DNA from: Geosiphon pyriformis uo1
Taxonomy: Eukaryota; Fungi; Glomeromycota
Assembly (NCBI GenBank): GCA_016748015.1
Contig: JAAOMT010000198.1
Coordinates: forward strand, 170,797-234,796
DNA: 64,000 bases
Reading direction: 5' to 3'
Part shown: positions 2,100 through 54,018 of the stretch, one piece after another
Position numbering within the stretch: the stretch's first letter is position 1
How the letters are laid out: each line of letters opens with the position of its first letter
Made by a program: the position numbers and the translations under genes
Notes under the pieces: model-generated
Database searches by the model: none
Told to the model about the DNA's origin: nothing
The model's input: the letters and a program-made list of their open reading frames with translations, nothing else

Positions 2100-3985
2100 C
2101 CAGCCACCATGCTGAGAAAAAAATTTAACAGAATTGCAATTCCAGAAGGCTACTAAAAACAATTATTAAATCTCTGTTCATTATACAAAGAACTCTACAA
2201 CAAAACTTTCAGATTAACCAAATTTTTAGATACCAATAGCAGAATATCAATCAAGTACCAAGTTACGGATTTGTTATTTGATTTGAGACCCCAAATAATT
2301 ATCTGTAATAGTATACTTGTTAGTATTGGTTTTAACAACTTATACTGAATTTTTTTTTAGCAAGCTTGATTATTTGGTCATAAATTTAAAACTTTTAAAT
2401 TTAATTAAGACTTTTTGCAAAAAACCAATGAACTATATTCTAATAAAAACAATTTTGCCAAATTTAAATAATATTGATTTAATTACTAATTTAAAAAAAT
2501 TTATTAAAATTTTTTTAACTATTATTTTTTAATTTAATCTAATGTTAATTTTTAAATTAGTATTAACCAAAATTTTTTTTTATATCTAGTTGCTTTGTAA
2601 TCTTAAAACTGAATTCAGATATAAATAATACTTTAATAATTCTTTGGAATTTTAAAAGAATTGATGTTCTTTCAAAATTATTGATATTAAAAAAAAATTT
2701 TTAATAAACTTAAATTTTTTATTTAAACACAGCTAAAAAGTTAATGTTTAATACAAATAATTTGGCTAAATTAAAACTTTTTTTTCTTTTTTAAGTATTT
2801 AATTACAAAATAAAACTAATTAACCAAAGTAAAAAAAAGTTTATAACATTATTATTATCATTAAAGCTAAAATTACACAAGCCAAAAAAAAAAATTATCA
2901 CATTTTTAGAATTAAAACACTTAGCTTTTAGGATATTTATGTAAGAATTCAAAGACTTATTATTTTTACTTTTAGTATTATAACCAATATTATATAAAAG
3001 TAACTTAAACTTTAGATTCATTTTATTACTCAAATATTTAACTTTGTTAATTAATATTTTAAGCTTTTGTACCAGATTTTTACTTATTAAACTTAAGGCA
3101 ATATTTTTAACCAATTTTTTTTTAGATATTATATTACTAATAATAGTTATTAAAACAACAACAAAAAAGTTTGTGTTTTAAAAAATAGTAAAAACAAAAT
3201 AGTAAAGAGAAATAAAAACAAAAAACTTTTTTTATCAAATTGGTTCTTTAGAAAATTTTGAACATAAGAAAGAAAAAAAGTTTTTAAAACTTTTTATAAT
3301 ATTTAAATTAATTTTTTATATTAACTTTATTTATTTAGCTTTAAATATAGCTTTATATTATGTTTTTATCTGTTTTTATTGGGTGTTTTTTAATTAATAT
3401 TAGCTTATAATTTAAATCTTTTAAATTTATTATTATTAAAATTGTTTTATAATATATTAAAAACAATTTATAATAATAATAATTTTATTTAAAAAAATAT
3501 AAATAATTATTTTTATTGTATTTTTTAAATTATATTTATTTATTTATTTATTGCTAAATTATCAAATAATATATTATACAATTTTAAATACTTAAGTTTT
3601 ATTAAATTAGCATCTTTTTTAGTTTGTTTTTATTTAAATTATTTTTAATAATTATATAATAATTATTGTTAAGAATTTTTACAATAAAATTATTAGTATA
3701 ATATTTAAACAATTTTTTTTAATACTATTTCTGCATAAATACTTATTATTTGATTTAATTTTTCTTTTAAAAAACAATTAAATACTTAAAATTTTTTTTA
3801 TAATTATATATATATTTTTTATTAATTTATTGTTAATAATAATTATTATTTTTAAATTGGGGCAGACTGCAACAAAACCAGACAACGTGACACAATTTCA
3901 TTTGCTATAACTAGCAGTGCAATTAACGTCAATCTTCCCATATTAATATACTGTATAAAAGCTCCCTCAGTGTTTCGTATTTCCC

Positions 3986-5996
3986 ATGTCTCAACCGGCC
4001 GAGTCAAGACGTTCCGCAAGGATAGCTTGGGAGGTCGCGCCACCACCTATTGAGCAACCCATTTCTCTGTTCTGTCTTGTGCAGGGTGAACCAACGGAGA
4101 AGGCATTTCCGGTTGACGTTGAAAAAAGCAAAACAGTTGGCCACTTGCGAAAACTGATATGTGAGGAGACTCAAGAAACATTCAAGAACTTAGATGCCAA
4201 AGACCTCACTCTCTGGGCTGTGTCTGTACCAATAGAGGATGGAACAGTGCAGGTTGACTTAGCTCAGGTCAACAAGCGCAGGTTACTTCCCAGGTCAAAA
4301 ATAGCTAATATAATTTCAGAAGATGATCTCGCTGATGAAGGCTTTTACATCTTTATAGAACCACCAACAGGTACTTGTTTGATATCATGCCATTATTCTA
4401 TCACTTTTTTGCTAACTTTATCTCAAATCACCATCTATCATTTTGTTTATTCAATCCACTATCAGACGTTCCGAGTATGAATATATACTATATGACTGAG
4501 TTGCCTATCTTGATCTTTTCTGACTCATATTCTTCGAATCTTCGCAAGCTCCTACTATTATTGAACGCCGAAACCTGAATACACGTAAAATTCGAGATGC
4601 GGATCCTCCGTCAAGTGCTTCCCAGCCAAAGAAACTTCGTAAGATACAGGCGGGTGAGCTGCTTCTATGTGCTCGTCCTGCTGATTGTGTGGGCCCCCCA
4701 GTACATATGTACAATGAGGTTTTTTCCAAGTTCTTATTTGACTACAATGACGAGGATCTTAAACCGTTTGCGAGACTCTGTCAATGGACTACAAAATTTA
4801 TCCGTTCCATGACAGACATCTATGGGGATGAAGATGGGAGAGATACTGCTTTTCAGGATTTTATTGGCAAACTTACGAACGAATCACTTACAAAACAGTC
4901 CACAACTGATGGATTTGGTAATGATGGCATGATAGAATGCCGAACGGCAATTGGTGAGGTGCTTATTGTCAACATTGAGATAAAAAATGAAGTGGGTACA
5001 GGAAATTGCGATCCTTACATACAGGGAATTTTTTCATATTCTAAATATTGGGCACATGATAAGGTAACTTTCTATGCAATTGATATTTCTATGGCCCCTA
5101 TAGAGCTATTGTACTGATTATTAATACTAAAATAACTCTAGTACGACAACTTTCGTCGTCGAAGCAACTGCCCATCATTTATCATTGCCATGGCTGGGCC
5201 GTGGATCTGCATTGCAGGTGCCGTATACCTTGAGAAACCTGTAATTGCTCCTCTTACCGATTATATATCTTTAATGGAAACTTACGATACCAATCATAAG
5301 CATCGGATTGCACGACTCTTCCAGGCCTTCAGCAATGGCATTGACAATTTAAAGGCATTTTATCAACAGAATATACCAGCTGCATCAAGTAATCTCGAGT
5401 TTTTGTATCCATTTCCTTGTCAATATGTCGATGGACCATCAACTGTAAGATTTAGCTATATAGAACCTTTAAAAGTAGACAGTGTGAAACACTGGAAGGC
5501 ACGCAATACTGAGGGGAAGGATATTGTCATCAAGTTCACCCAGCGTTATAACGAGGCAGCACATAAGCTATGTGCTACGAAGAATATGGCACCTCAACTG
5601 TTATACATCGGTAAGGAGGTGTATGGATGGTGTATGGTGGTAATGGAGTATGTTGATGGGGTAACGCTTAGTCAAGCAAATCTCACCCGGGATGTTTATC
5701 TGGAAGTCCTTGAAAAAGTCGAAGAAGCCATAAAGATACTTCATGAAAACAACATTGTCTTCGGTGATCTACGCCCTCCAAATATAATGGTTCAGCAAAA
5801 CGGGGGTAACCCTTACGTTAAATTGATAGATTTTGATTGGGCGGGGCGTGATCAGGTAGATTGTTATCCTCCTTTTATGAATCATGTGCACATAAAGTGG
5901 CCCGAAGGAGCCAGTGATGGAAAGATACTGCAGAAGAAGCATGACCTTGTTATGTTGGACTATTTGAAAGATAATGCGGATCAGCTCAACACATAA
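3986..5996 (+). CDS. Crinkler (CRN)-family protein: ubiquitin-like CRN header + PD-(D/E)xK REase-like domain + kinase
   Basis: Header ISLFCLVQGEPTEKAFPVDV..TVGHLRKLI..LTLWAV; GNDG...EIKNEVG...Q nuclease-like motif; kinase IVIKF, FGDLRPPNIM, KLIDFDWAG. Exons ~3986-4370, (4466-4474), 4549-5063, 5143-5996 join in frame via GT-AG introns. Confidence 0.85.
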
Positions 5997-6109
5997 TAGA
6001 GCAGTTGACATGCCCATTTATCTAGTATTAGTACATTGCTTAATTAGTAAAAAGAGAATCTTAGTGTAAAGAACACAATAATAAAAATTATATATAGGAT
6101 TACTCATAT

Positions 6110-7850
6110 ATGCAAGATAGTAAAAATGGTGGTTCCACTGAATATGAAAAAGCAATACGTTTCTTAGAAACAGGTTGCCATTGTGGTTGTTTATCAAAGG
6201 TTCCCAGAGAAAAATTTGCCGAATTACGTGAAGCGTTTCAAGCTCTCTCCAGATCCGAGCAAGATATATTTTTAATGGCCCAACTAAAAGCAATGAATGG
6301 TGGAGAAATAACTGCCAGTCGACGTCTTAAAAAGAAAGCGCGTACTAATAAGAGAACTTTTTATTATTGAGATCGCAATACGCCACTTTGTCAGAAAACG
6401 TATCTCAATATGTTGGGAATTGGTCGCACTCACTTCGAAAACGTTAGAAATCACTTAGCGACAAACGGTATAATACCACGCGTTCATGGTAACATAAAAC
6501 GAATACCGCGATGAAAAACCAAAATAACAATTGATATAACCGTTGCTATCGCTGTGAAGAACTTTCTCGAAAACTATGCTGAAATTCATGGATTACCAAG
6601 TCCTGGTAGAAATGTCAACCGAATTACGCTTGTATTTTTACCAGCAGAAACGAGTTACAAATCGGTCTATCGTGATTTTATTGCAGGCCTCGAAAACGAT
6701 AGCTCGTTGAAGGTGTTAAAATATGATGCATTCCGCAAGTTATGGCACCAATTAACGCCTTATATTCAAATCATGAGTCCAAGAACGGATTTATGTGACA
6801 CATCCCAACATTTTCGGAACGGCTTACAGTATAATGCTCGTAAGGAAGAAGAAGCGAGAGACTTACTAAAAAAATTTAAAGAGCATTTAGTTAAGGCCAA
6901 ATTAGAAAGAAATTATTACAACAAAAATACGAAATTGGCAGAAGAACAAAGAAAATTGGTAGATGATAATTACGCCGTAACAGGAGGTAAAGCTGATTAT
7001 TGTAGCGTTGACGCGACTGCGCATTACAGTTACGATTGAGCGCAAAATGTTCACGTACCCCATTCCGATCAACAAGTAAATAAAATTTACTATCTCAGTC
7101 CGCGTAAAGTACATTTATTTGGCATCCAAGATGAAGCAGTACGCGAACAAATCAATTACGTTCTTGATGAGAATGAAATAATAGGGAAAGGCCCTAATGG
7201 CACCCTGAGCATGGTATTCAATGGAATTAAGAGACTGAATAAAGGCGAAAAAGATTACTTGTGATAATGCGGGTGGTCAGAATAAAAATAATGCCACCAT
7301 TTGATTTTACCTATATTTAGTAATTTGCGGTTATTACGAAAGTATCGAATTAAATTTCATGGTACCTGGACATACCAAATTTAAGTGTGATGGTAGTTTT
7401 GGATTGATTAAAAAGCTTTATCGAAAAACAACAGTAGATTGTGTGGATCACATTGTTGAAGTTGTGAAAAAATCAAGTACAGCGGGATTAAACAAAGTTC
7501 AGTGTTATGAAAACGGCAAAGGCTTTCAATACTTAGATCTTAATTCCGTGTTGGGGATTTTTTTTAAGAAATTGAGTGGTTTACAAAAGTATCAGCATTT
7601 TCTATTTGAAGCAGCTCAACCTGGAGTTGTCAAAGCCCAGCTGGTTGCTAATGGTACTTATACTGAATTTAATTTGTTAAAAACTAGAAAAGCAAGTGTT
7701 TCTGAAATTACCAAAGAAATTAAGTCCTTTTCAATCCTAGTACTAACCCCTCCGCCTTTGGATTACAGAAGGCAAGAATACCTTTATCACAATATTCGTC
7801 CATTTGTCCGGGATGAATTCAAAGATATCACTTGTCCAGTACCAATCTAA
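6110..7850 (+). pseudogene. Sola-like DDD transposase written in genetic code 4 (TGA=Trp), one frameshift near 7250
   Basis: Track ORFs 6110-6370, 6554-7039 and 7359-7850 join when TGA at 6368, 6512, 7037 and 7302 is read as Trp. Motifs HGN, GLPSPGR, PRTDLCD, HYSYD(W)AQNV, GKGPN, TCDNAGGQNKNN, FMVPGHTKFKCDGSFGLIK, IRPFV..DITCP. No introns; no TAA/TAG in the reconstructed reading path. Confidence 0.85.
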
Positions 7851-7900
7851 TCTATACTGCCAATAAATAAACATATTTATATTACCGAAGCTATAGAAAT

Positions 7901-8879
7901 ATGAATAATCAAAACAAAATTGATTCCCTTTACACTTTTATCAAAGAACAAGTCAAACTCAAAGGGAAAAAATTAAAAATCATTGCTGATTGAGATGAAT
8001 GTTTACAATCTAATAAGCCATTTTTATTGTGAGAAGCTGGGAAGAAAAATCTTTCTTTTGGGGATTATTTTAAAAGATTTTGAAGCAAAGCTGAAATTGC
8101 TACTCATAGTCCTAAAGGGCATGGTTCTATGATTAATGCTGATGTAATAAATTCATGATAATGATCTTATATTGATAAAGATGATCCTAATGAGAAGACA
8201 AATATTCAAAGATTAGCTTCGGGAGAATTAAAAAGAATAAGAAATGAAAAGGAAACCCAGCATTGTAGTGAACAACATTCTTTTTATGATCGTTCCCCTT
8301 TTTTGTCTATTGCAAGCTTTAAAAGAAGAACTAATTAGTGAATTAATTATTGTGACAGCCTTTAAAAAAAAAGGACATGCGAAAGGTTATCCAGTGGGGA
8401 AAAAGAAAAAATTTGACAAAACTTGGGGACAATTTCCACAAGCCAAGGTTGATTTTATTGAAACTAAGGTTGTTTTAGAACAAGAATTAGTTCAACCTAC
8501 GAGATGGGATTATATTAAAGAGCATTATCCCAATTTTGATTTATATATTGATGATCATCCCCTTTCAATTGAGAAAACTAGCAAAATTATTCCCAACAGC
8601 TCTTATGTATTACCAAAATTTGCTTGTAACAATTATCTCGAAGCTCCCAATATTTACCATCTTGAGACTAGTGCTACTGATCTCAAAAAAGGAGACTTTG
8701 CCATTGCTGTCTTAGAGATGAAAAATAACCAGTTAAAGAAAAAACTAAAATTTCTGCAAATACAAGAGAGAAACAGTTGAGTTTTTTGGATGATAATTAG
8801 TGGATCACTAATTTTTATCTTAGTTGCTTTAGTAGTTAAAATTACAATAGTGCAGAAAAAACGTTTTAGAAAGAATTAA
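7901..8879 (+). pseudogene. Mollicutes/MRE-like HAD-superfamily protein with C-terminal TM anchor, code 4, pseudogenised
   Basis: MNNQNKIDSLYTFIKEQVKLKGKKLKIIAD(W)DECL (HAD motif I DxD), DLYIDDHP (motif IV), tail (W)VFWMIISGSLIFILVALVVKITIVQKKRFRKN*. TGA at 7991, 8030, 8081, 8156, 8162, 8778; one TAA (8159); one frameshift near 8313. Confidence 0.75.
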
Positions 8880-8882
8880 AAA

Positions 8883-9269
8883 ATTACTGACAAAGCAATG
8901 ACAAAGATCAGATCAAGCCATTATTTTTCGTTCTTGGTAAATTCATAAGTGATTTTTCTTTGTCTAAATATTCCTGAAGAGTTTGGGTATCATTGATTTT
9001 AAAAACGTATGGAGCAATTTTTTCTTCTTGAGCTTTCTTTAAAATACTTCTAATGGTGCTGTAATTCTTGGGTTCCATAGTGGATTTAATAAATAGTTCT
9101 ATTTAGTCCTATTGTTCTTTGGTGATGGTTTTGACAAAAGAAGTGGGTTTTGTTTCTACCTTTTGACCAGTTAAGACCTTAATGGATTGTTTCAGCAAAC
9201 CAGATATGGTTATTAAGTAGGCTATAGATTTTTCTTTTTTAATTACTTATTAATGTAAATTAGTTTCAT
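8883..9269 (-). pseudogene. Degraded K/E-rich ORF, possibly a third endobacterial gene
   Basis: Frame reads ...LKQSIKVLTGQKVETKPTSFVKTITKEQ*D*IELFIKSTMEPKNYSTIRSILKKAQEEKIAPYVFKINDTQTLQEYLDKEK...; convergent and abutting the HAD-like gene; family not recognised. Confidence 0.35.
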
Positions 9270-9559
9270 ATATTTTATTTTTATATAGAGATAATCCTAT
9301 ATTAATCCTGTTATGGTTTATATTTATCATATTTTGGTATGATAAAGTGAGTATTAAAATTAACAAGTTCATAAATTATGAATGAGCACCATTATTACTT
9401 TTCAAAATGTCATTAGTTATACTGGTCAATTTACAGTCACATCATAATCAGTTTCTTATTTATGTTATATAATCAAATGTTTACTTTGTTTGGTTTTGTT
9501 GTAGTCTGTCCCAATTTATATAATTTTTGTTTTTATTTATGTTTATATTTTAAAACTTA

Positions 9560-12500
9560 TTTTTTTTTTATTATGCAATTAATAAGTAAAGCCTAACTGC
9601 TATCTAGTATATAGAACCAAACTAAGTGGAACAAACTAAATGCAGCTTACACACTTTCTACATATGGCCAGCCACTTAGACCAGACAAGATTACACTACA
9701 CATTTATGTGAACAGAAGCATTACCATCCAAACCAAAAAAAAAATGGCATATTTTGTATCTACCAAAATTAATAGCAAAAAAATCAATAACACTAAGTAT
9801 ATAAACAACTTCATCTGACAACTTAGATACCAAACAATAAGATAAGCCTAAAACTACACTACTATCTCTGACCAAACCAGCCTTCTCTATATCCACCCTA
9901 TGCTTGAATTTAACAGACTATACCTTAGTGCAAAACAATTTGACCACAAACCTAACATATTCAATAATAGCCAATAAGACTTTTTCTTTCTCTTCAAAAG
10001 CCAAAGTAGTCTCAGCATACCAATCTTTGAACACAAAACTCTTATATACAGCAATAAACAGACCCAAGTCCAAAGAACTATTTGAAAGTAAATGCAAGAC
10101 AACTAATATAGGTGAGCAAGAAAAACTTACCAAAAACACTTATCTTTTAGCAGTATTGGCTAAAATGTTCTTACAAAGTTTAGCATAATTAGAACAAGCA
10201 AAAACATGATTAGACAACTTTATCTCTTTACATAGCAAGCATAGCACTCCAGAATAGTCCTTGTCATACAACCTTTTTTTGACTACTACAGACAACTATC
10301 TATGTACTATTTTTATTAAATAGGTGTGCAAATTGCCTAAGCTCTTGCTAATAAATCCAGAGAGCATGTAAGAATCAAAATGTCAGACCTTTAAAGTAAC
10401 AGTCCAATATATCTCCTTAATCATAGCACCCGGAACAATATTATAACCAGAACCAGCCTTCTAACGAGCATGGCAAATCAACCAATAAAGATCACAAACA
10501 AAATAACAAGCATTGTCTGACATAACAGTATTCTCAGCAACCAAAAAACAGTCTTGAACTCCAACTGATAAAAAAATTGAAGAAAAAACGGCCTTTTTTG
10601 CCATTTTATCAGTCTTAATATTGCCTGGAATCCCTGAATGACCTTTAATCTTCACCTATTTAACCAAAATGTTTTTATTTTTAATAAAATTAACAATATG
10701 TGATCTTTTAATCCAGCACTGATTGTAAAAATCAGACACTGCAATTTAAGTCTCTAATACATAAGCATCAATTGTAGGTTGGCTGTCTGAATATAAAATC
10801 ACAAAACAAGAAAAAGAAACACATTCTAAGACTAAAGCAATAGCTTGTAATTCAGCCAAAGTAAAAAACAAAAGTTCAAAGACTCTAATCCCAATACCTA
10901 TATCTATAGTCAAAAAATAGACAGCTATATTATTTGTCATCTCAGCTGAACCAGTACCCTTTAAGGACCCATTTGTATAAACCTTAATACAATTTAACCA
11001 AATTTCCAAAAGACTACTATGAACACCAGTGTAAGTCTCAGAATCCAAGATATTCAATGCTAATAACCCATGAGTTTTGGTGACCATGACCTTAGTGAAA
11101 GCATACTTGTCCATAAAATTAGCTGTTAGAGTAAACCAGTAAGGAACAAGGCCTCTTAAATCCAATTTCTTCCACTGCTGAAATGTTTTCCAGTCCATTA
11201 CTCTTTAGAAGTCTATCACTAAAAGCAATACCAAATTGTCTCAAGGAGAAAACAGAATTATAATACAAAGAATGACCCAGGATGTCAGATATCGGAAATC
11301 TGTTAGAGCCACAAAAAGCACTGGGCAAATTGTTTACCAAAAACATCTTATTTTCCAACAAGATCCTTATTATACCAGTTAAAAAATTATTCACTGAATT
11401 AATTTTCAACCTGACAGAATGCTGTAAAAAATTCAAAAAAAACCACCTCAAAACTTGTAAATCTAAAAATCTATGCTCAAATAAACATTCAAAAATGCCA
11501 TAGACATTAAAAAAGAAAACCAGTGAAGCCAACTTTCCTTCAGATTGTATCTGCTCAAAAGATTTCAAATTATACAAAAAAAGGTGATGTAAAATCTTAT
11601 TTGGAAAATTTCGCAGCAACTTAGCCTTAGATCTGAAATTTTTTTTGACCATAACATTCTATTTGTAACACACACTCAATGAAACATAACTAAACTGTAT
11701 CCAATAGCTAACTATAGGCTGAAAAACAACCAATGCCAAATAAGAAAATTGTTTATCTGTAATAGCTTTTCTAAGCACCACATTTGAAAAAAATCTAACA
11801 TCTGTATGAGCTTAGACCAAATTAGGCTTGAAGAAACCCTCAATAGACAAAAAAATCCCTAAGTACCTATGTAATTCACCACACTTAGCAATTAAGATTG
11901 GCAAGTCATTAATCAAAAGTGAAGCAGTCTTGACACCTTGATTGATTGAAATAGCCACTGTCTTATCATTATTAATAAAAATGTTATTAACAACAAAGAA
12001 TCTACTAGCAATATCCAAAATATTCTGTGTAGAAGCTTAACAGCTCCCAACCCAAATAGTATCATCAACAAAAATGCCAGCAGCCAAAAAGAAAGTTCTT
12101 TCTTCAATAGCTTAAACTTGGCCAGTGTTTACTACAAACTTTGTATTAATATGGTATTCAAATAAGTGTTTTTGTTTCTTAATCTTACATAAAAATGGAT
12201 CATAGAATATCCACCAAAGAAATAAAAAGAAAATCCCACCTTAATCCAACTTATCATGTATCCTGTAATCAATTGAGAGGCCAAAATTCATTATAACTTT
12301 GTTAATACAATTCTCATAAATACTACTAAAAAACTTGATAAACTGACTGCACATCTTAATATGATGCAAATTAATTTTCAAATGATACCAGCCCATAGAA
12401 TCATAAGTCTTGTGCATGTTTTACAATACCAACAAAGTTCTCTATTCTTTTCCAAAGCATCTTCAACAACAGAACCAATGGCAAAAATTAGAGATTGAGT

Positions 12501-30829: not shown

Positions 30830-31446
30830 TTAAGAAAGATGAATATATTAAGAGAAAAATTATTATAAATAGTAAGATTTAAATTTAATATAATAAAAAT
30901 AATATTTGTAGTTAAATATAAAATATTAATTATAATTAAATATAAATTTATATTATTTTTATTTAATATTAATTAACAAATAAGATATTTTTTTATAAAA
31001 TTTATTTGTGTTTTTTATAATTTAAACTGTATAATGTAAATATATTTCAAGTTTACTATTTTTAATTAAAATTTTTTAACATTAATTTATAATTTTGTAT
31101 TAAATTAAATTAAATTTTAAATTATATTATAATTAACTATATTTTTGATTTAATTTTATAATTATAATTTTTTTATGTAAATTTAAGTATTATACATATT
31201 ATTTGTAAAATTTAAATAAATAATAATTTCAAATATAATTATTGTTATAAATAAAATTTTATTAAAAAAACTATTAAAATTTAAATTAAAAATAAATATT
31301 AAACAAAATTAAATAATATAATATAAATAAAAATGTATATAAGTTAATAACTTAATTTAAAATATATTTAAAAATAAAATATTATAAAAATTGTAATTAA
31401 TCATATTTAAATTTAAATTTAAAATTATAATAAAATAATAATTATA

Positions 31447-31490
<44 letters not shown>

Positions 31491-31900
31491 AATCATTAAT
31501 TAATAGATAACCATTAAAAAAAATGTAAACATAATTAAAAAATAATATTTTTACATATTTTAGCCCATTTTTTAACAAAATTAATTATTTGTGTTGTTAT
31601 TTATTATTAATTAATTAATATTATTTTAATAATATAAACTAAAACAAAAAAAATTTTAAATTTTAGTTATAATATACAAAAAATAAGTTTATTTAAAAAT
31701 ATTTATACTAATATTCTACAATATAATTAATAATTTTGTTTGGTAAACTTAAAAATAATATAAATAATAGAACATTTATTTTTAATCATCTTAATTACCT
31801 TAGTATATTAATTCCAGCCTTTATAATACTAATTTTAACTTTTTAATAAAAATATTCTTTAGCAAAATATTTCAATTTAGATTGTTATTTACATAATCTT
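30830..31900. other. Extremely AT-rich intergenic block including (ATT)n
   Basis: Very few G/C; similar blocks at ~3150-3850, 16830-17720, 36050-36690, 51800-52850. Confidence 0.8.
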
Positions 31901-32176
31901 TAGCAATTAAGGTCAATAAAATTAAGTTCCTAAACTGGGTACATGTACAAATAGATTTACTGATCTTCAATTTCATGTAAATTTTAATTTTTTAAATAAC
32001 ATGGTGTGACTCTGTCCCGGGGAACTACTTTTGCATAAATAATGGCGAATCTGGTTAAACTCCTGTGATTGATAAAAGCAATGCTGATCTTTTCAAAATT
32101 TCTTGATTTGGTGGTCTTTTAAAAAGACTACGAACCAAAAAATTATTTGCCAATCATTTTAAACAAAGTCTTCGAG

Positions 32177-35505: not shown

Positions 35506-37018
35506 CGAATAACATTTAAATTCTCTTGGTGTAGCTATAACCTATAGCCTATCATTATATGGACTAATCGAGTGGTGTAACGAATCATTTGATTCGCTGT
35601 GTAGCCAATAGTTTTTCAATTGCATGTTACCCCGTTTTGGTTTAATGCTAGGATACTTGTAGGACGCGAAAAAATTTTTCGATTTACTAGCAGCACCCAA
35701 AATTCAATGGTGACCAAGCAACAAAATAAGTTTTTAATATGAGCGACAAATTGGTTTAACAAAAAAAATAAAGCCAATGAAAAAGTGAAAAAGAATGAGA
35801 AATGAAAAAGCAAAGTGTAATATTTTAATAAATTTACATTTTTACCAGCTTTTGCGAAATAAAAAAATAGTTTTATGGAAAGACTATCTAGATTTACTAT
35901 TTTCCAAGACAAAGAGAGACCATATATTAAAATCAAGATGGCTTTTACAATATAAATTAACAAAATCAACTAACCAGTTATAAAAACAATGGTATTCCAA
36001 AAAACCATGTCAATTTATTACAATGTTTAACATTCAAAAAATTTTGAAAATCAAATAACTGGTTAAATAATTTTAAGAAAAATATGTATATTTAAGTAAA
36101 ACAAATAATGCACCATTAAATAACTTTTTTAAAATATTATAATAAACTTAAAAATATATTAAAAAAATATAATATATATATATATATATAATACAAATAA
36201 AAATTATACTAAAATTAAAAACTTGAATTAATTAAAATACTTTTTAATTATTTAATATTATATATATATTAAACTTTAAAAAAACATAAAAAATTATTTT
36301 TAAAAGTTTTAATTTTAATTATTTTAATATAATAATTATAATTTTTTTAAAAAAAAAACAAAAAAATATATATGTATATTAAAAATAAAAGTTATTATTA
36401 TTATTAATTAATATTAACTGTTTTTGTTATCAAATGATTTAAATAATAACTAAAAAAATTGGTAATCTTATGTTTAATAATATTAATAAAATTTGAAATA
36501 ATATTTTTAATAAATTGTTTTATTAATTCAAAAAGATAATATATATATCAAAATTTTAATAATTATAATACAATATAAAATACTTAAAAAAATTATTTTT
36601 ATATTAATTAATACAAACAAACAAAAAAAACTTTTTTTATAAAATTATAAAATATAATATATATATATATATATATTAATATTTTTGCAACCAAAAAAAG
36701 CTAGTCGAAGAAATTGCTAATTACAACTGAAAATAATCCCACCAAATGGAATTTAAATAATTAGTATTTGAAACAAAATATTAATGTATTCTATTTATTA
36801 TTAAAAGTAATGCATAAATTGCTACAATGAGAAACAGTTTAAGACTTGATAACGATGGTTAGACAAATTTTTGAATTACATGTCGGACAATTGCAATAAA
36901 AATTGCTTGCTATTATGATTATATGAAAAAAGTGTTTCAAATATCAGGTGGATTTGTAAAAATTTCTAATCGTTTGAATGTTCATTCTAATAATAATAAG
37001 TTACATTCTAATATCTTT

Positions 37019-51502: not shown

Positions 51503-54018
51503 GGAAAATTTATAGTAAATAAAAGGGAAAAAAGAACACCTGTGTTTTGGAGATTAAAATTTTCAAACTGATCGATCACATGTATAAAAAATTGAGGGCT
51601 GCGGATTCTGTTTCGTAAAAAAAAAACAAAATAATTAACCACAACATATAATGTCAAAGTATCATTTTATAGGAAAAGAAATTTTAATTTTTATCTTATT
51701 GAAAATACACTTTTTGTCATTATGTCCCTAATTTTTTGTGAATAGCATTAATTTAAATTTTGGACAGTAAATTATTTCAGAAATTTTTTTTTCTCCTTTG
51801 TTACTAATATATTATTTTGATTACTAACTATTTTTTGTTCTTTTTTTCTTATCTTTACTATTTTATTTTATTTTTATTGTTGTTATTACTGTTTTTATCA
51901 TTTTTACTGTTTTTATTATTATTATAATTATTATTATTATTATTATTGTTGTTGTTGTTGTTGTTGTTGTTTTTATTATCATTACTGTTATTATTATCAT
52001 TATTTTTTATTATTTTCTTTTTAATTATTGTTTTAATTAACACAATTTGGATATTAAAGATTTTAAATATTAAAAAACAGAAATTATTTTTAATTACATA
52101 TTATTATAATTATAATTATAATTATAATTATTATTATTATTAAGATATATTAAATTTTTTTTAATTTAATAAATACATTTTATTTTAAAAAAATTCTTAA
52201 AACAATAAATAAAATTAACCCAAATTTGTTTTTTAATATAATAATAATAATAATAATAATAATAAAATAAAACAAAAAATCTTAATAATAATTTAACTAT
52301 TTAAAATAAACAAAAGTTTTATAAATCTATTATTTAATTAAAAATGTTTTTATAAAATTATTTAACTTAATTTTTGTTAATATTATAAATAAAAAAATTA
52401 ATTAAATATTAATTATATAAAATAAAGTTAATCTAATATAATATATAATAATAAACTTATTTATTTTCAAAAAATTAATCAATAAATATTTTATTTGAAT
52501 TTATAAAATATAAAAATAAGTTTATAAAATCTAAGTAAATAATTTTATTTATGTAATTTCTATTAATTTTACATTTTTATTCAATATTTTTTTATTAAAA
52601 AAATTATATAAAAATTAATTAACAAAATATTAATCTATATTGTTTATATTATTTATATTTGTAATTACAAAAACAATTTAATATTACAAAAAAACAAGTT
52701 AATACAATTAATTTTTAAAATCCAAAAAATCCAAAAAATCCAAAAAACTTAATAAAACAATAATTTGTATTTTACAAAAAACTTGTTTAATTATTTTTAA
52801 AATATCAAATATAATAAACAAAAAAATTATGTTTGGCTGAATTCGTTATCAATTTTAACAATTTTAATAACAAAAAAATCCAAAACATTAAAGAATCTGA
52901 AATGTATAAATGTCAAAATTTTAAAACTTTATAAATAAAAATTGTTTGAAATCTTGATTCTTATTAAAAATAGTAACATTGTCAATTATTGATATATATT
53001 ACAATCCATCTACAAGCTGCAAAAATTTGAAAATTTTGGCAAAAGTAATTTAAAAACCAAGCTTGGTCTTCAACCACTTATCAATTATATGGGGCTATTG
53101 AACTTTAGATTCACATTATTTTTCTACGTGATGTATTATATTTTGTGATAAAATCACGCGAGCATAATTCGAATTATGAAAAATTTCAAAAACCTGGCCT
53201 GTTGAAAGTTATTTTTACGATTACATAACAAATACTTCGAAGCAGCATCAAATTCCTGGAATAAGCTTAGGGAAGCTTGAGCAACCAACATAAATTTCAT
53301 AAAGAATGATTAGCATAGGAATAACCTGCGAAACAGACTAATGGTCTGCTGAGAATGCTAGTTTTTATTGTTAGACATTAGTATTGATTAGAAGATGCAA
53401 AATATGATAATGGCTTACCTCACTTACCTTTCCTTCAAATTTCATGGTTTGAGTTTGGAATCTGTATCAACAGAAACGAATATTTTCACTAAATAATGAA
53501 AGAATTGGTGAGCATTATAATTATTCAGTTGAGCAGGATTATTGAATATAGAGGATCTGTGTTGTTTGAGGACGAAAAGTGAATGACTATGTGTGGCGTG
53601 TGCCTTGTCGAAACATTGAAAAAACAACTTTTCTCGGCAATAGCGTTATAATTGTTGACTATTGACCGGTTAGTTGAAGGGTTGAAATTGAAACTAGCTG
53701 AATGCGTCCGTTTAAAGATGTTTTATTGTTGGAGTTTGCTGATTTTTAGTTGTCAGGTGAGGTACAAGTCGAAATTATCGGTTTTCCTCTGTTGAACTTT
53801 AAGTTGAAGCTAAGTTGAAGGCTGACTGAACTGAACAGGAAGGAGATCGCATTCTTGTCGCCATAATTCTGTGTCGAGGGCGATTGAGATAAACAAATAA
53901 TACTGCAAATGAAATCACTAAAAACACAATTAGAATAATACACTGCTCATTTCTAAAGATGCTCTTTGAGGGGCAAAAATTTCCGCCCAACTCTTCGAAT
54001 TGACCACAAGATATCTTC

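Follow-up and report, generated by a model that had tools for sequence, protein, structure and literature searches.

How does a gene that can be read only when TGA encodes tryptophan come to lie in the nuclear DNA of a fungus? The window analyzed here, a stretch of 64,000 nucleotides of Geosiphon pyriformis uo1 (contig JAAOMT010000198.1 of assembly GCA_016748015.1, forward-strand positions 170,797–234,796), contains such a gene, which we call ORF1. The original prediction regarded it as a eukaryotic Sola-type transposase that had entered a Mollicutes-related endobacterium (MRE) of the fungus, had been recoded there, and had been carried back to the nucleus.

ORF1 Encodes a Sola-Like DDD Transposase

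Re-reading of the sequence confirms that positions 6110–7850 form a single protein of ~575 codons that is readable solely with TGA as Trp (table 1). The in-frame codons include four TGA, the last of which lies past a frameshift, and one TGG (6743), with neither TAA nor TAG before the terminal TAA. The TAA/TAG-free run of 390 codons is longer than that of all 2000 shuffles (maximum 233, mean 94), and the remaining long ORFs of the window contain two to six TGG each and no TGA. The frameshift near 7250 is an 8-bp deletion that, by comparison with other copies, is private to the window copy. All three predicted catalytic motifs, YSYD, CDN, and KCDG, are intact: the Asp of HYSYD is kept in each of the 12 aligned sequences that span it, and all 15 aligned sequences retain the DN of CDN and the D of KCDG.

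Database searches used stop-free protein pieces as queries, and the spliced host gene described below was searched exon by exon; alignment, dN/dS, and trees are based on code-4 read-through translations (with X at frameshifts) and joined coding sequences. The C-terminal piece of ORF1 (7305–7847) matches the Pfam family DUF7869 (PF25273; E 1.6e-9, 38.1 bits, with a curated cut-off of 26 bits), which is also precomputed on most ORF1 homologues, and the N-terminal pieces have no Pfam match. A sequence search of solved structures with ORF1 gave no match, and a Foldseek search of the PDB with its AlphaFold model (pLDDT 88.6) gave nothing significant. In an exhaustive structural search with the same model, the best matches were Mos1, Metnase, retroviral integrases, and Sleeping Beauty (Z 6.8–8.1; the Mos1 match has Z 8.1 and covers 130 residues at rmsd 2.5). 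The top 30 matches were transposases or integrases without exception. ORF1 is accordingly modeled with an RNase H-like transposase/integrase fold; a Z score of ~8 is moderate alone, but the match list is uniform. The assignment of the gene as a Sola-like DDD transposase in code 4, located in nuclear DNA, is supported.

ORF1 Is Part of a 5,654-bp Element with Host-Type Cargo

ORF1 is enclosed in an element of 5,654 bp (3859–9512) that has ~34-bp terminal inverted repeats (TIRs) and a 4-bp AATT TSD and sits in AT-rich nuclear DNA. A 5′ boundary at ~6073, the start of copy-to-copy similarity, was considered and rejected, the 5′ TIR being found at 3859.

Table 1. Features of the element that contains ORF1 (window positions).
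Feature	Position	Strand	Description
5′ TSD	3855–3858		AATT; identical 4 bases follow the element
5′ TIR	3859–3892	+	Starts GGGGCAGACTGCAACAAAACC...; ~28 of 34 bases match the 3′ arm
Crinkler-kinase cargo gene	3986–5996	+	Host type, standard code; exons 3986–4370, 4549–5061, 5140–5996
ORF1 leader	6073–6109	+	TATATA, then AGGA ~10 nt upstream of ATG (putative promoter and Shine-Dalgarno); conserved; copy-to-copy similarity begins here
ORF1	6110–7850	+	DUF7869/Sola-like DDD transposase, code 4; TGA-Trp at 6368, 6512, 7037, 7302; TAA at 7848
ORF2	7901–8879	+	Second code-4 gene, hydrophobic C-terminus; TGA at Trp-like places; broken by TAA and a frameshift
Small ORF (MEPKNYS...)	8908–9078	-	Within a long subterminal inverted region; no Pfam family
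Copy-specific 144-bp stretch	9106–9249		Other copies skip query 3107–3250
3′ TIR	9479–9512	-	Inverted match of 5′ TIR
3′ TSD	9513–9516		AATT; unrelated repeat family from ~9535

The cargo gene contains 9 TGG and no TGA codons. Searched exon by exon, it matches the Pfam Crinkler N-terminal (E 1.1e-18) and Pkinase (E 4.3e-10) domains; its two introns are supported by GT..AG joints (4370/4549 and 5061/5140) in a spliced RNA contig (run X2) that ends at ~6057, and it has a paralogue at C371:242700–244746. Sequence upstream of 6073 differs from copy to copy, and in a cross-element comparison the upstream cargo of different elements is unrelated, which leads us to reject a single ancient capture. 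ORF2, downstream of ORF1, is shared by other copies that have the long form of the element; it has no Pfam match, and a protein search for relatives returned Geosiphon proteins only and none in MRE. In intact elements (L103, L092, and L114), the small ORF is located at either end in inverted orientation. Contigs of other copies join 9090 directly to 9250/9270. Elements that carry intron-bearing, standard-code genes between their TIRs are present together with a MITE-like family.

The Family Diversified in Code 4

As had been predicted, the alignment places Trp or another aromatic residue of homologues in the TGA columns of ORF1. Among 27 copies, the Trp columns are occupied only by TGA, TGG, or the one-step decay product TAA (TGA/TGG/TAA per column: 21/0/3, 4/15/3, 6/17/0, 17/5/1, and 19/1/0). 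The median pairwise dN/dS between copies is ~0.13, at dS of 0.25–0.8, and the comparison of the window copy with an Ambispora copy yields dN 0.049, dS 0.63, and omega 0.08. The interchange of TGA and TGG at Trp columns only, together with this purifying selection, indicates that the family diversified while it was translated with UGA as Trp. The downstream cargo is TGA-rich as well, with, for example, 15 TGA and no TGG in 436 codons. Every family member in the Geosiphon genome is broken in the standard code, with no intact code-1 copy, and distant genomic copies without TGA are full of TAA. Given three to five UGA stops per transposase ORF, the transposase would not be translated in the nucleus; a suppressor tRNA sought inside the elements was not found. 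Gene models of AMF split or truncate genes of this kind, and the proteins found in Ambispora and Diversispora represent code-4 ORFs only in part.

Nuclear Copies Have the Footprints of Transposition

The genome contains 138 copies of a 26-nt TIR core (75 forward and 63 reverse; the reversed control occurs 0 times). This core defines a family of elements of 5–9 kb and small MITE-like derivatives, all of which are on nuclear contigs. The window copy, which had been viewed as a single dead relic that was passively carried in, is one of ~70 or more TIR/TSD-bounded insertions in the genome. Of the TIR pairs that were read, eight have an exact 4-bp TSD match (two of them non-palindromic, AAAT/ATTT), two have a one-base difference, and three are unreadable; TSDs of other copies include ATAT, AAAT/ATTT, and ATTT/AAAT, and the family TSD type is 4-bp AWWT. 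The copies examined do not have the arbitrary breakpoints, devoid of TIR and TSD, of NUMT-like insertions, and their defined TIR ends and 4-bp TSDs indicate that integration was carried out by a transposase.

Relatives in Endobacteria and Other AMF

Homologues were predicted in the genomes of Ca. Moeniiplasma glomeromycotorum, and they were found there. Among Ca. Moeniiplasma MAG proteins, P0050 and P0118 are homologues, loci L031–L035 are from named MAGs and have a bacterial gene neighborhood, and a full-length MRE homologue with one frameshift is located amid restriction-modification and ribosomal genes. TIRs and a TSD were also found in MRE: contig L235 (GC 32%), which is densely packed with code-4 genes, one of them a HET-domain gene that uses TGA-Trp, carries a 4.2-kb element that contains ORF1 together with coiled-coil and Zn-ribbon cargo shared with the Geosiphon elements; its 33-nt TIRs are related and 94% complementary, and its TSD is AAAT. 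In the sampled MRE copies, identity is only ~57%, and these copies too carry frameshifts or truncations. The TIR variant of the nuclear clade is absent from MRE MAG loci, which is weak evidence of absence because very few MRE genomes have been sampled. More than 120 soil metagenome contigs contain the exact TIR core, and convincing bacterial flanks were found in 0 of 32; across MAG loci, the assembly, and metagenome flanks, no nuclear-clade element with its own TIR variant has an unambiguously endobacterial setting. This family is also present, intact in code 4, in Ambispora leptoticha and Diversispora eburnea, with 86% nucleotide identity, and their copies are interleaved with Geosiphon copies in the tree; TIR/TSD-bounded nuclear insertions span three AMF genera. 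Support is good for an endobacterial origin of the nuclear copies.

Our phylogenetic analysis (IQ-TREE) recovers the topology (AMF code-1 nuclear, (MRE, nuclear code-4)), with supports of 100/100 for the nuclear code-4 clade, 98/94 for the MRE clade, 100/99 for both joined, and 100/99 for their sister relationship to the AMF code-1 sequences. The original prediction expected the element to be nested in an MRE clade that is itself nested among fungal Sola proteins; the tree gives sister groups instead. At the deep node, fungus-to-MRE and MRE-to-fungus transfer each need two compartment changes, and the direction of the first leg is thus left undecided. The supposition that the family is specifically eukaryotic did not hold, as an alignment-based motif scan of 185,579 species identified 54 bacterial loci that carry it; an earlier scan that queried bacterial genomes with a single protein piece gave no match. 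In the motif scan, no Mollicutes genomes other than those of MRE matched. The round trip from fungus to MRE to nucleus is a plausible hypothesis, according to which the family would first have entered MRE from a fungal nuclear Sola-like element.

Origin of the Nuclear Insertions

We posit that ORF1 is the transposase gene of a cut-and-paste transposon whose nuclear copies were probably inserted by transposase made in the endobacterium. The transposase and downstream genes are likely in code 4 because the family lives and is translated in the MRE of the fungal cytoplasm. Enzyme made there would have as its substrate element DNA arriving in the nuclei: a released element could jump directly into nuclear DNA, or copies and MITEs already in the nucleus could be mobilized in trans, and each nuclear insertion would leave a normal TIR/TSD footprint. 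The nuclear copies, being untranslatable, would then decay, as the 8-bp deletion and broken ORF2 of the window copy may illustrate. The footprints suggest that a bacterial enzyme inserts DNA into host chromosomes; the site of enzyme synthesis and the route by which DNA and enzyme enter the nucleus are inferred. The MITE-like family and the intron-bearing, standard-code cargo suggest events inside the nucleus, so that a strictly one-way jump from bacterium to nucleus is insufficient as an explanation. We tentatively entertain, as a possibility that is open to considerable doubt, a two-code shuttle in which the half made up of the transposase and its downstream genes works only in the endobacterium, the Crinkler/kinase half works only in the nucleus, and an endobacterial enzyme acting across compartments inserts and re-mobilizes elements and MITEs in host chromosomes. 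Such a shuttle would have its intron-bearing half between the 5′ TIR and the transposase, and host genes might be carried back.

The passive alternative is that a fungal Sola element entered MRE and gained UGA-Trp codons, and that bacterial DNA then integrated in the manner of NUMTs to leave a single dead relic. The existence of MRE homologues, the sister position of the code-4 clade to AMF code-1 nuclear copies, and the restriction of Mollicutes matches to MRE are consistent with its first leg, as is the presumption that a code-4 cell can read a standard-code gene but not vice versa. We nevertheless consider this alternative unlikely. The TIR/TSD bounds of the window copy and many others contradict its passive step, and the number of TIR cores, the occurrence of the family in bacteria proper, and the sister-group topology also count against it. 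We are similarly reluctant to favor an autonomous nuclear transposon, whether the fungus reads through UGA, has a suppressor tRNA, uses recoding, or supplies a standard-code relative in trans. All clade copies so far are in nuclear-type DNA, the MITE family and captured intron-bearing host genes resemble nuclear activity, and ORF1 and ORF2 of other copies have matching RNA contigs; however, host genes use TGG, the UGA load and standard-code breakage of the family and the TAA load of its TGA-less members point the other way, as do the TGA-rich downstream cargo and the lack of a tRNA in the elements, and the AMF code-1 element has a different TIR.

UGA is a Trp codon in fungal mitochondria too, and the direct donor is unsampled, so the source could be proposed to be the mitochondrion of the fungus, a plasmid of that mitochondrion, or a code-4 symbiont not yet sampled. 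This is very improbable: the closest code-4 relatives are in Ca. Moeniiplasma MAGs and on a dense bacterial-type contig, and no search revealed a mitochondrial context. An artefact, be it a bacterial–fungal misjoin or a standard nuclear pseudogene with sporadic G>A mutations, has a negligible chance of being the answer. Public assemblies of Mucoromycota at times include MRE contigs (PMC11423566), but the family has at least 55 matches at the DNA level and 118 at the protein level, on carrier contigs of up to 2.7 Mb, the TSDs match, a nuclear tRNA-Gly adjoins one copy, and bacterial 16S, sought in the assembly as a trace of donor contigs, was not found among SSU matches that are all of eukaryotic length. 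Read contigs from two samples bridge 5346–6250, from the host gene into ORF1; the whole window element is unspanned by read contigs, as short-read contigs break at repeats and the 3′ flank is another high-copy repeat. These observations exclude the assembly chimera that the original prediction had raised as a possible objection, and its other objection, a sporadic origin of the TGAs, is excluded by their being common to copies and confined to Trp columns, by TGG interchange, and by the low dN/dS.

Implications

Endosymbiont-to-nucleus transfers are usually seen as accidents of DNA repair. The footprints described here point to dozens of integrations made by a transposase, spread over three or more AMF genera, and that transposase is readable only in the bacterium. 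If true, transposition by an endobacterial enzyme would be a natural case in which an enzyme from one domain of life reshapes chromosomes that belong to another, and a source of genome change in fungi long thought clonal. The nuclear copies would constitute a fossil record of a poorly sampled endobacterial mobilome, and the in-frame TGA would be a built-in tag of the compartment where a copy last worked, so that both the direction and the pace of the traffic could be measured. The shuttle, if it exists, would be a standing transposase-driven DNA channel between bacterium and nucleus that spreads among AMF along with the bacteria. A well-defined bacterial IS family is also added to the Sola-like group.

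Comparison with Known Systems

The Sola superfamily of DNA transposons was reportedly described by Bao and colleagues in 2009. A DDD core, short TIRs, and AT-rich 4-bp TSDs (here AATT, ATAT, AAAT, and ATTT) are common to Sola and the family described here; unlike Sola, the latter has its transposase and downstream cargo in code 4. Sola2 elements have TSDs of AWWT, ATAT, AAAT, and ATTT, and chimeric Sola2 elements with variable cargo are known (PMC3627910). Two Dictyostelid Sola2 transposases (PMC3627910 supplement), compared by motif, are without the GQNKN and GHTK motifs; we therefore assign no Sola subgroup.

The bacterial DUF7869 IS of Desulfobacterium, Desulfocicer vacuolatum DSM 3385, and Thiomargarita encode one transposase of ~640 aa, with 34–38% identity over the catalytic core, and have 33-bp TIRs starting GG(C/G)GGG and TSDs of TTAT, AGAT, and ATAT. 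On the Desulfobacterium chromosome, the IS is 2,074 bp with 33-bp TIRs and 4-bp TSDs and has at least five near-identical copies. These IS differ from the code-4 elements in using the standard bacterial code, in being cargo-free and chromosomal, and in falling outside the AMF/MRE clade. The standard-code sister clade of AMF includes sequences of Rhizophagus irregularis, R. clarus, and Gigaspora margarita and the metagenome element L105. The AMF code-1 element is 2.35 kb, has 8 TGG and no TGA, is without code-4 cargo, and is flanked by ATAT, with TIRs that start GGGA (sequence GGGACCTTTTCTAGC...) and differ from those of the code-4 elements.

Host-derived genes in MRE genomes were reportedly described by Naito and colleagues in 2015. 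MRE genomes are rich in transposases (1–8% of genes) and contain fungal-type genes (PMC4916391), and the code-4 HET-domain gene of L235 fits the fungal-type genes known from MRE. Literature searches found no description of MRE-coded elements transposing into nuclei, and the published gene flow is from fungus to MRE, opposite to the nuclear insertions reported here. NUMTs, NUPTs, and Wolbachia-to-insect transfers are likewise DNA of a cytoplasmic bacterium decaying in host chromosomes; in contrast to those inserts, which arise by end-joining at arbitrary breakpoints, the insertions described here have TIR ends and 4-bp TSDs.

Reading Frame, Fold, and Genetic Code of the Transposase

The transposase gene, ORF1, runs from its ATG in one frame and continues in another to a TAA, the frame change being an 8-bp deletion private to the copy in the window (see table). 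The original prediction described four in-frame TGA codons, one TGG, no TAA or TAG, and a small-deletion frameshift near 7250, all of which we recover. Within ORF1, 390 successive codons lack TAA and TAG, a length reached by none of 2000 shuffles (maximum 233), and the remaining long ORFs of the window contain no TGA and 2–6 TGG each. The C-terminal piece of ORF1 matches the Pfam model DUF7869 above its cut-off. The catalytic half of the transposase, taken from another copy that is stop-free there, was modeled with AlphaFold (pLDDT 88.6), and the structures closest to the model are without exception DDE/D transposases or integrases: Mos1 (Z 8.1), followed by Metnase, retroviral integrases, Sleeping Beauty, IstA, Tn5, and Hermes. 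The three putative catalytic aspartates, which had been described as intact, are kept in every aligned homolog covering those positions.

When 27 copies are aligned by codon, the five tryptophan columns contain only TGA, TGG, or TAA, a one-step decay product (TGA/TGG/TAA counts of 21/0/3, 4/15/3, 6/17/0, 17/5/1, and 19/1/0), and distant homologs carry tryptophan or another aromatic residue there. The median pairwise dN/dS under code 4 (UGA read as Trp) is 0.13 at dS 0.25–0.8, with higher values only in the closest pairs. The interchange of TGA and TGG, together with this ratio, shows that the copy lineages were under protein-level selection while UGA encoded tryptophan; the TGA codons of the family are sense codons. 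Sporadic G>A damage as their source is incompatible with both the column pattern and the dN/dS values.

Features of the element and its surroundings (window positions)
Feature	Position	Details
Whole element	3859–9512	5,654 bp; TIRs of ~34 bp, starting GGGGCAGACTGCAAC; AATT on either side
Cargo gene	between 5′ TIR and transposase	standard code, three exons; Crinkler and kinase domains; TGG 9, TGA 0
ORF1	6110–7850	ATG at 6110, TAA at 7848
ORF1 in-frame TGA	6368, 6512, 7037, 7302	
ORF1 sole TGG	6743	
ORF1 frame change	~7250	8-bp deletion
Contig from read sample X1	5346–6250	zero differences
Contig from read sample X4	5078–6250, minus strand	omits 6022–6103 (82 nt)
Dispersed repeat	9535–10600	unrelated, directly after the element
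Low-GC blocks	3001–4000, 31001–32000, 36001–37000, 52001–53000	9–15% GC

Element Structure and Copy Number

The Geosiphon assembly (128 Mb, 792 contigs), in which the window occupies C725:170797–234796, yields at least 55 matches at the DNA level (72–97% identity) and 118 at the protein level, on contigs of up to 2.7 Mb. Similarity between copies starts ~35 bp 5′ of the ATG; a 5′ end at this point was rejected in favor of 3859, an inverted copy of the conserved 3′ terminus. The genome contains 138 occurrences of the 26-nt terminal inverted repeat (TIR) core, versus 0 of the reversed control. TIR pairs bound elements of 5.2–8.6 kb as well as a MITE-like family of 380–550 bp, whose copies have a common interior and resemble the long elements in just their terminal 41 bp. 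Of the TIR pairs read, eight carry 4-bp target-site duplications (TSDs) that match exactly (ATAT, AATT, and, as non-palindromic cases, AAAT/ATTT and ATTT/AAAT), two show a single mismatch, and three are unreadable. This pattern is the footprint of transposition and not of passive integration, and the family of 138 TIR cores and TIR/TSD-bounded insertions contradicts the proposal of a single insertion carried in passively. Intact long elements have ~420-bp inverted ends containing a small ORF, and code-4 genes 3′ of the transposase, one example having 436 codons with 15 TGA and no TGG.

The repeat that follows the window element has at least 40 genomic copies at 70–79% identity. Four loci (L006, L015, L095, and L104) contain N runs of 2.4–3.3 kb within elements, representing sequence that is unassembled or withheld. 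The low-GC blocks of the window lie between gene-bearing segments, and the element is at the edge of one.

Nuclear Location and Cargo

The GC content of the element is 36% versus 15% in its 5′ flank. The Crinkler-kinase gene appears in GT..AG-spliced form in a contig of read sample X2, and contigs of X1 and of the separate sample X4 bridge this host gene into ORF1, over the 5900–6200 stretch for which the original prediction asked for spanning long reads. These short-read contigs span neither the whole element nor its 3′ junction, where a different high-copy repeat follows immediately. A search of the Geosiphon assembly for bacterial 16S found none, and a nuclear tRNA-Gly adjoins another family copy. 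In several elements the slot 5′ of the transposase is filled by an intron-bearing gene in standard code that differs from one element to another.

The segment omitted by the X4 contig is a GT..AG intron when read on the minus strand, which suggests a spliced antisense transcript covering the stretch where the kinase gene ends and ORF1 begins. A Crinkler-kinase paralog on another contig (L101, C371:242700–247000; 80% nucleotide identity) is followed by a degenerate ORF1 (64%) with no TIR nearby, the paralog being far better preserved than the transposase remnant.

Relatives in Endobacteria and Other Fungi

Among named relatives beyond nuclei of arbuscular mycorrhizal fungi (AMF), the closest proteins come from MAGs of Candidatus Moeniiplasma glomeromycotorum (53–57% identity). 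These Mollicutes-related endobacteria (MRE) encode them amid restriction-modification and ribosomal-protein genes, the neighboring genes mix TGA and TGG as ORF1 does, and one copy is full-length under code 4 with a single frameshift. Metagenome contig L235, 9.8 kb long and 32% GC, is packed on one strand with code-4 genes. Its 4.2-kb element has a transposase, an AAAT duplication, and 33-nt TIRs that show 94% complementarity and a clear relation to the nuclear TIRs; the coiled-coil and Zn-ribbon cargo of this element is the same as in Geosiphon elements on contigs C702 and C633. A sister lineage of the nuclear element thus works as a transposon in a genome of endobacterium type. TIRs and a TSD, which the original prediction asked to look for in MRE genomes, are found on L235; the nuclear TIR variant has no copy in a bacterial context among the MRE MAG loci and metagenome flanks searched. 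At L235:1–1959 lies a gene for a HET (heterokaryon incompatibility) domain of fungal type, with 11 TGA-Trp codons; it appears to derive from a host and to have been recoded in the bacterium.

The nuclear family extends to Ambispora leptoticha, whose 589-codon ORF1 is intact under code 4, to Diversispora eburnea, where a 10-kb element has both TIRs, ORF1, and code-4 cargo, and to an AMF-like metagenome contig. The exact TIR core is present in more than 120 soil and rhizosphere contigs. The window copy shares 91% protein identity with the Ambispora copy (omega 0.08) and is nearer to it than to several other Geosiphon copies, so the family does not track host phylogeny; carriage by horizontally moving endobacteria would fit this distribution. 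At both fungal loci the deposited gene model reads only part of the code-4 ORF, giving 461 aa against 589 codons in Ambispora (L113) and 409 aa against 567 codons in Diversispora (L114). On metagenome contig Ga0126384_10209051 (L131), two elements lie end to end with a common ...CCCC ATAT GGGG...; either they inserted in tandem or one landed at the margin of the other.

Phylogeny and Direction of Transfer

The family comprises 3,223 cluster representatives (E<0.001). It had been presented as specifically eukaryotic, which it is not: animal genomes, Antedon and Halichondria among them, share it with 54 bacterial loci, including the isolate Desulfocicer vacuolatum DSM 3385. A Desulfobacterium chromosome (OY764894.2; L042–L045, L076) has at least five near-identical copies of a 2,074-bp IS that encodes a 641-aa DUF7869 transposase and has 33-bp TIRs (GGCGGGTTGTCTGAG...) and 4-bp TSDs. 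This is an IS family of bacteria within the Sola-like group.

In the IQ-TREE phylogeny, the nuclear code-4 copies form one clade (100/100) that is sister to the MRE sequences (98/94; joint node 100/99), and both are sister to a standard-code AMF nuclear clade (100/99) of Rhizophagus irregularis, R. clarus, and Gigaspora margarita that includes a 2.35-kb element with 8 TGG, no TGA, its own TIRs, and ATAT flanks. The original prediction expected nesting in an MRE clade itself nested among fungal Sola; the tree shows sister groups, so that each direction of the first transfer costs two compartment changes. Two inferential arguments favor fungus to bacterium: a code-4 cell would read a standard-code gene at once, and not the reverse, and an alignment-based motif scan of 185,579 species' genomes found zero matches in other Mollicutes. 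A round trip from fungus to endobacterium to nucleus is slightly better than an even bet. Elsewhere in the tree, a Halichondria sponge protein (EUK_Halichondria_P0167) groups with Stappiaceae MAG copies (BAC_Stappiaceae_L047; 100/99), reflecting either sponge-symbiont transfer or mis-binned sponge DNA.

Proposed Mechanism

The best-supported reading is that endobacteria would make the transposase, which would insert the element into nuclear DNA, where the copies would be untranslatable and would decay. The original interpretation is partly supported and extended: endobacterial relatives exist, but TIR/TSD footprints contradict passive integration. Insertion by endobacterial transposase leaves unexplained the MITEs, the varied upstream cargo, and the missing bacterial copy with nuclear TIRs. 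The MITE family and the varied intron-bearing standard-code cargo point to activity within the nucleus, which would imply an enzyme reaching nuclei repeatedly or a fungus somehow reading UGA; we found no suppressor tRNA inside the elements and no intact standard-code copy in the Geosiphon genome.

Comparison with Known Systems

Published Sola elements have a DDD core, TIRs, and AT-rich 4-bp TSDs, all matched by the Geosiphon element; Sola2 TSDs are AWWT, ATAT, AAAT, and ATTT (PMC3627910). Two Sola2 transposases in the supplement of that paper lack the GQNKN and GHTK motifs. Membership in the Sola superfamily is likely, as judged by the DDD core, TIRs, and TSD type. MRE are known to have abundant transposases and host-derived genes (PMC4916391). 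The literature searched holds no description of code-4 transposons in AMF nuclei; should the mechanism be confirmed, it would have no clear precedent. The Geosiphon case combines a Sola-like transposon with endosymbiont-to-host transfer, both of known kinds.
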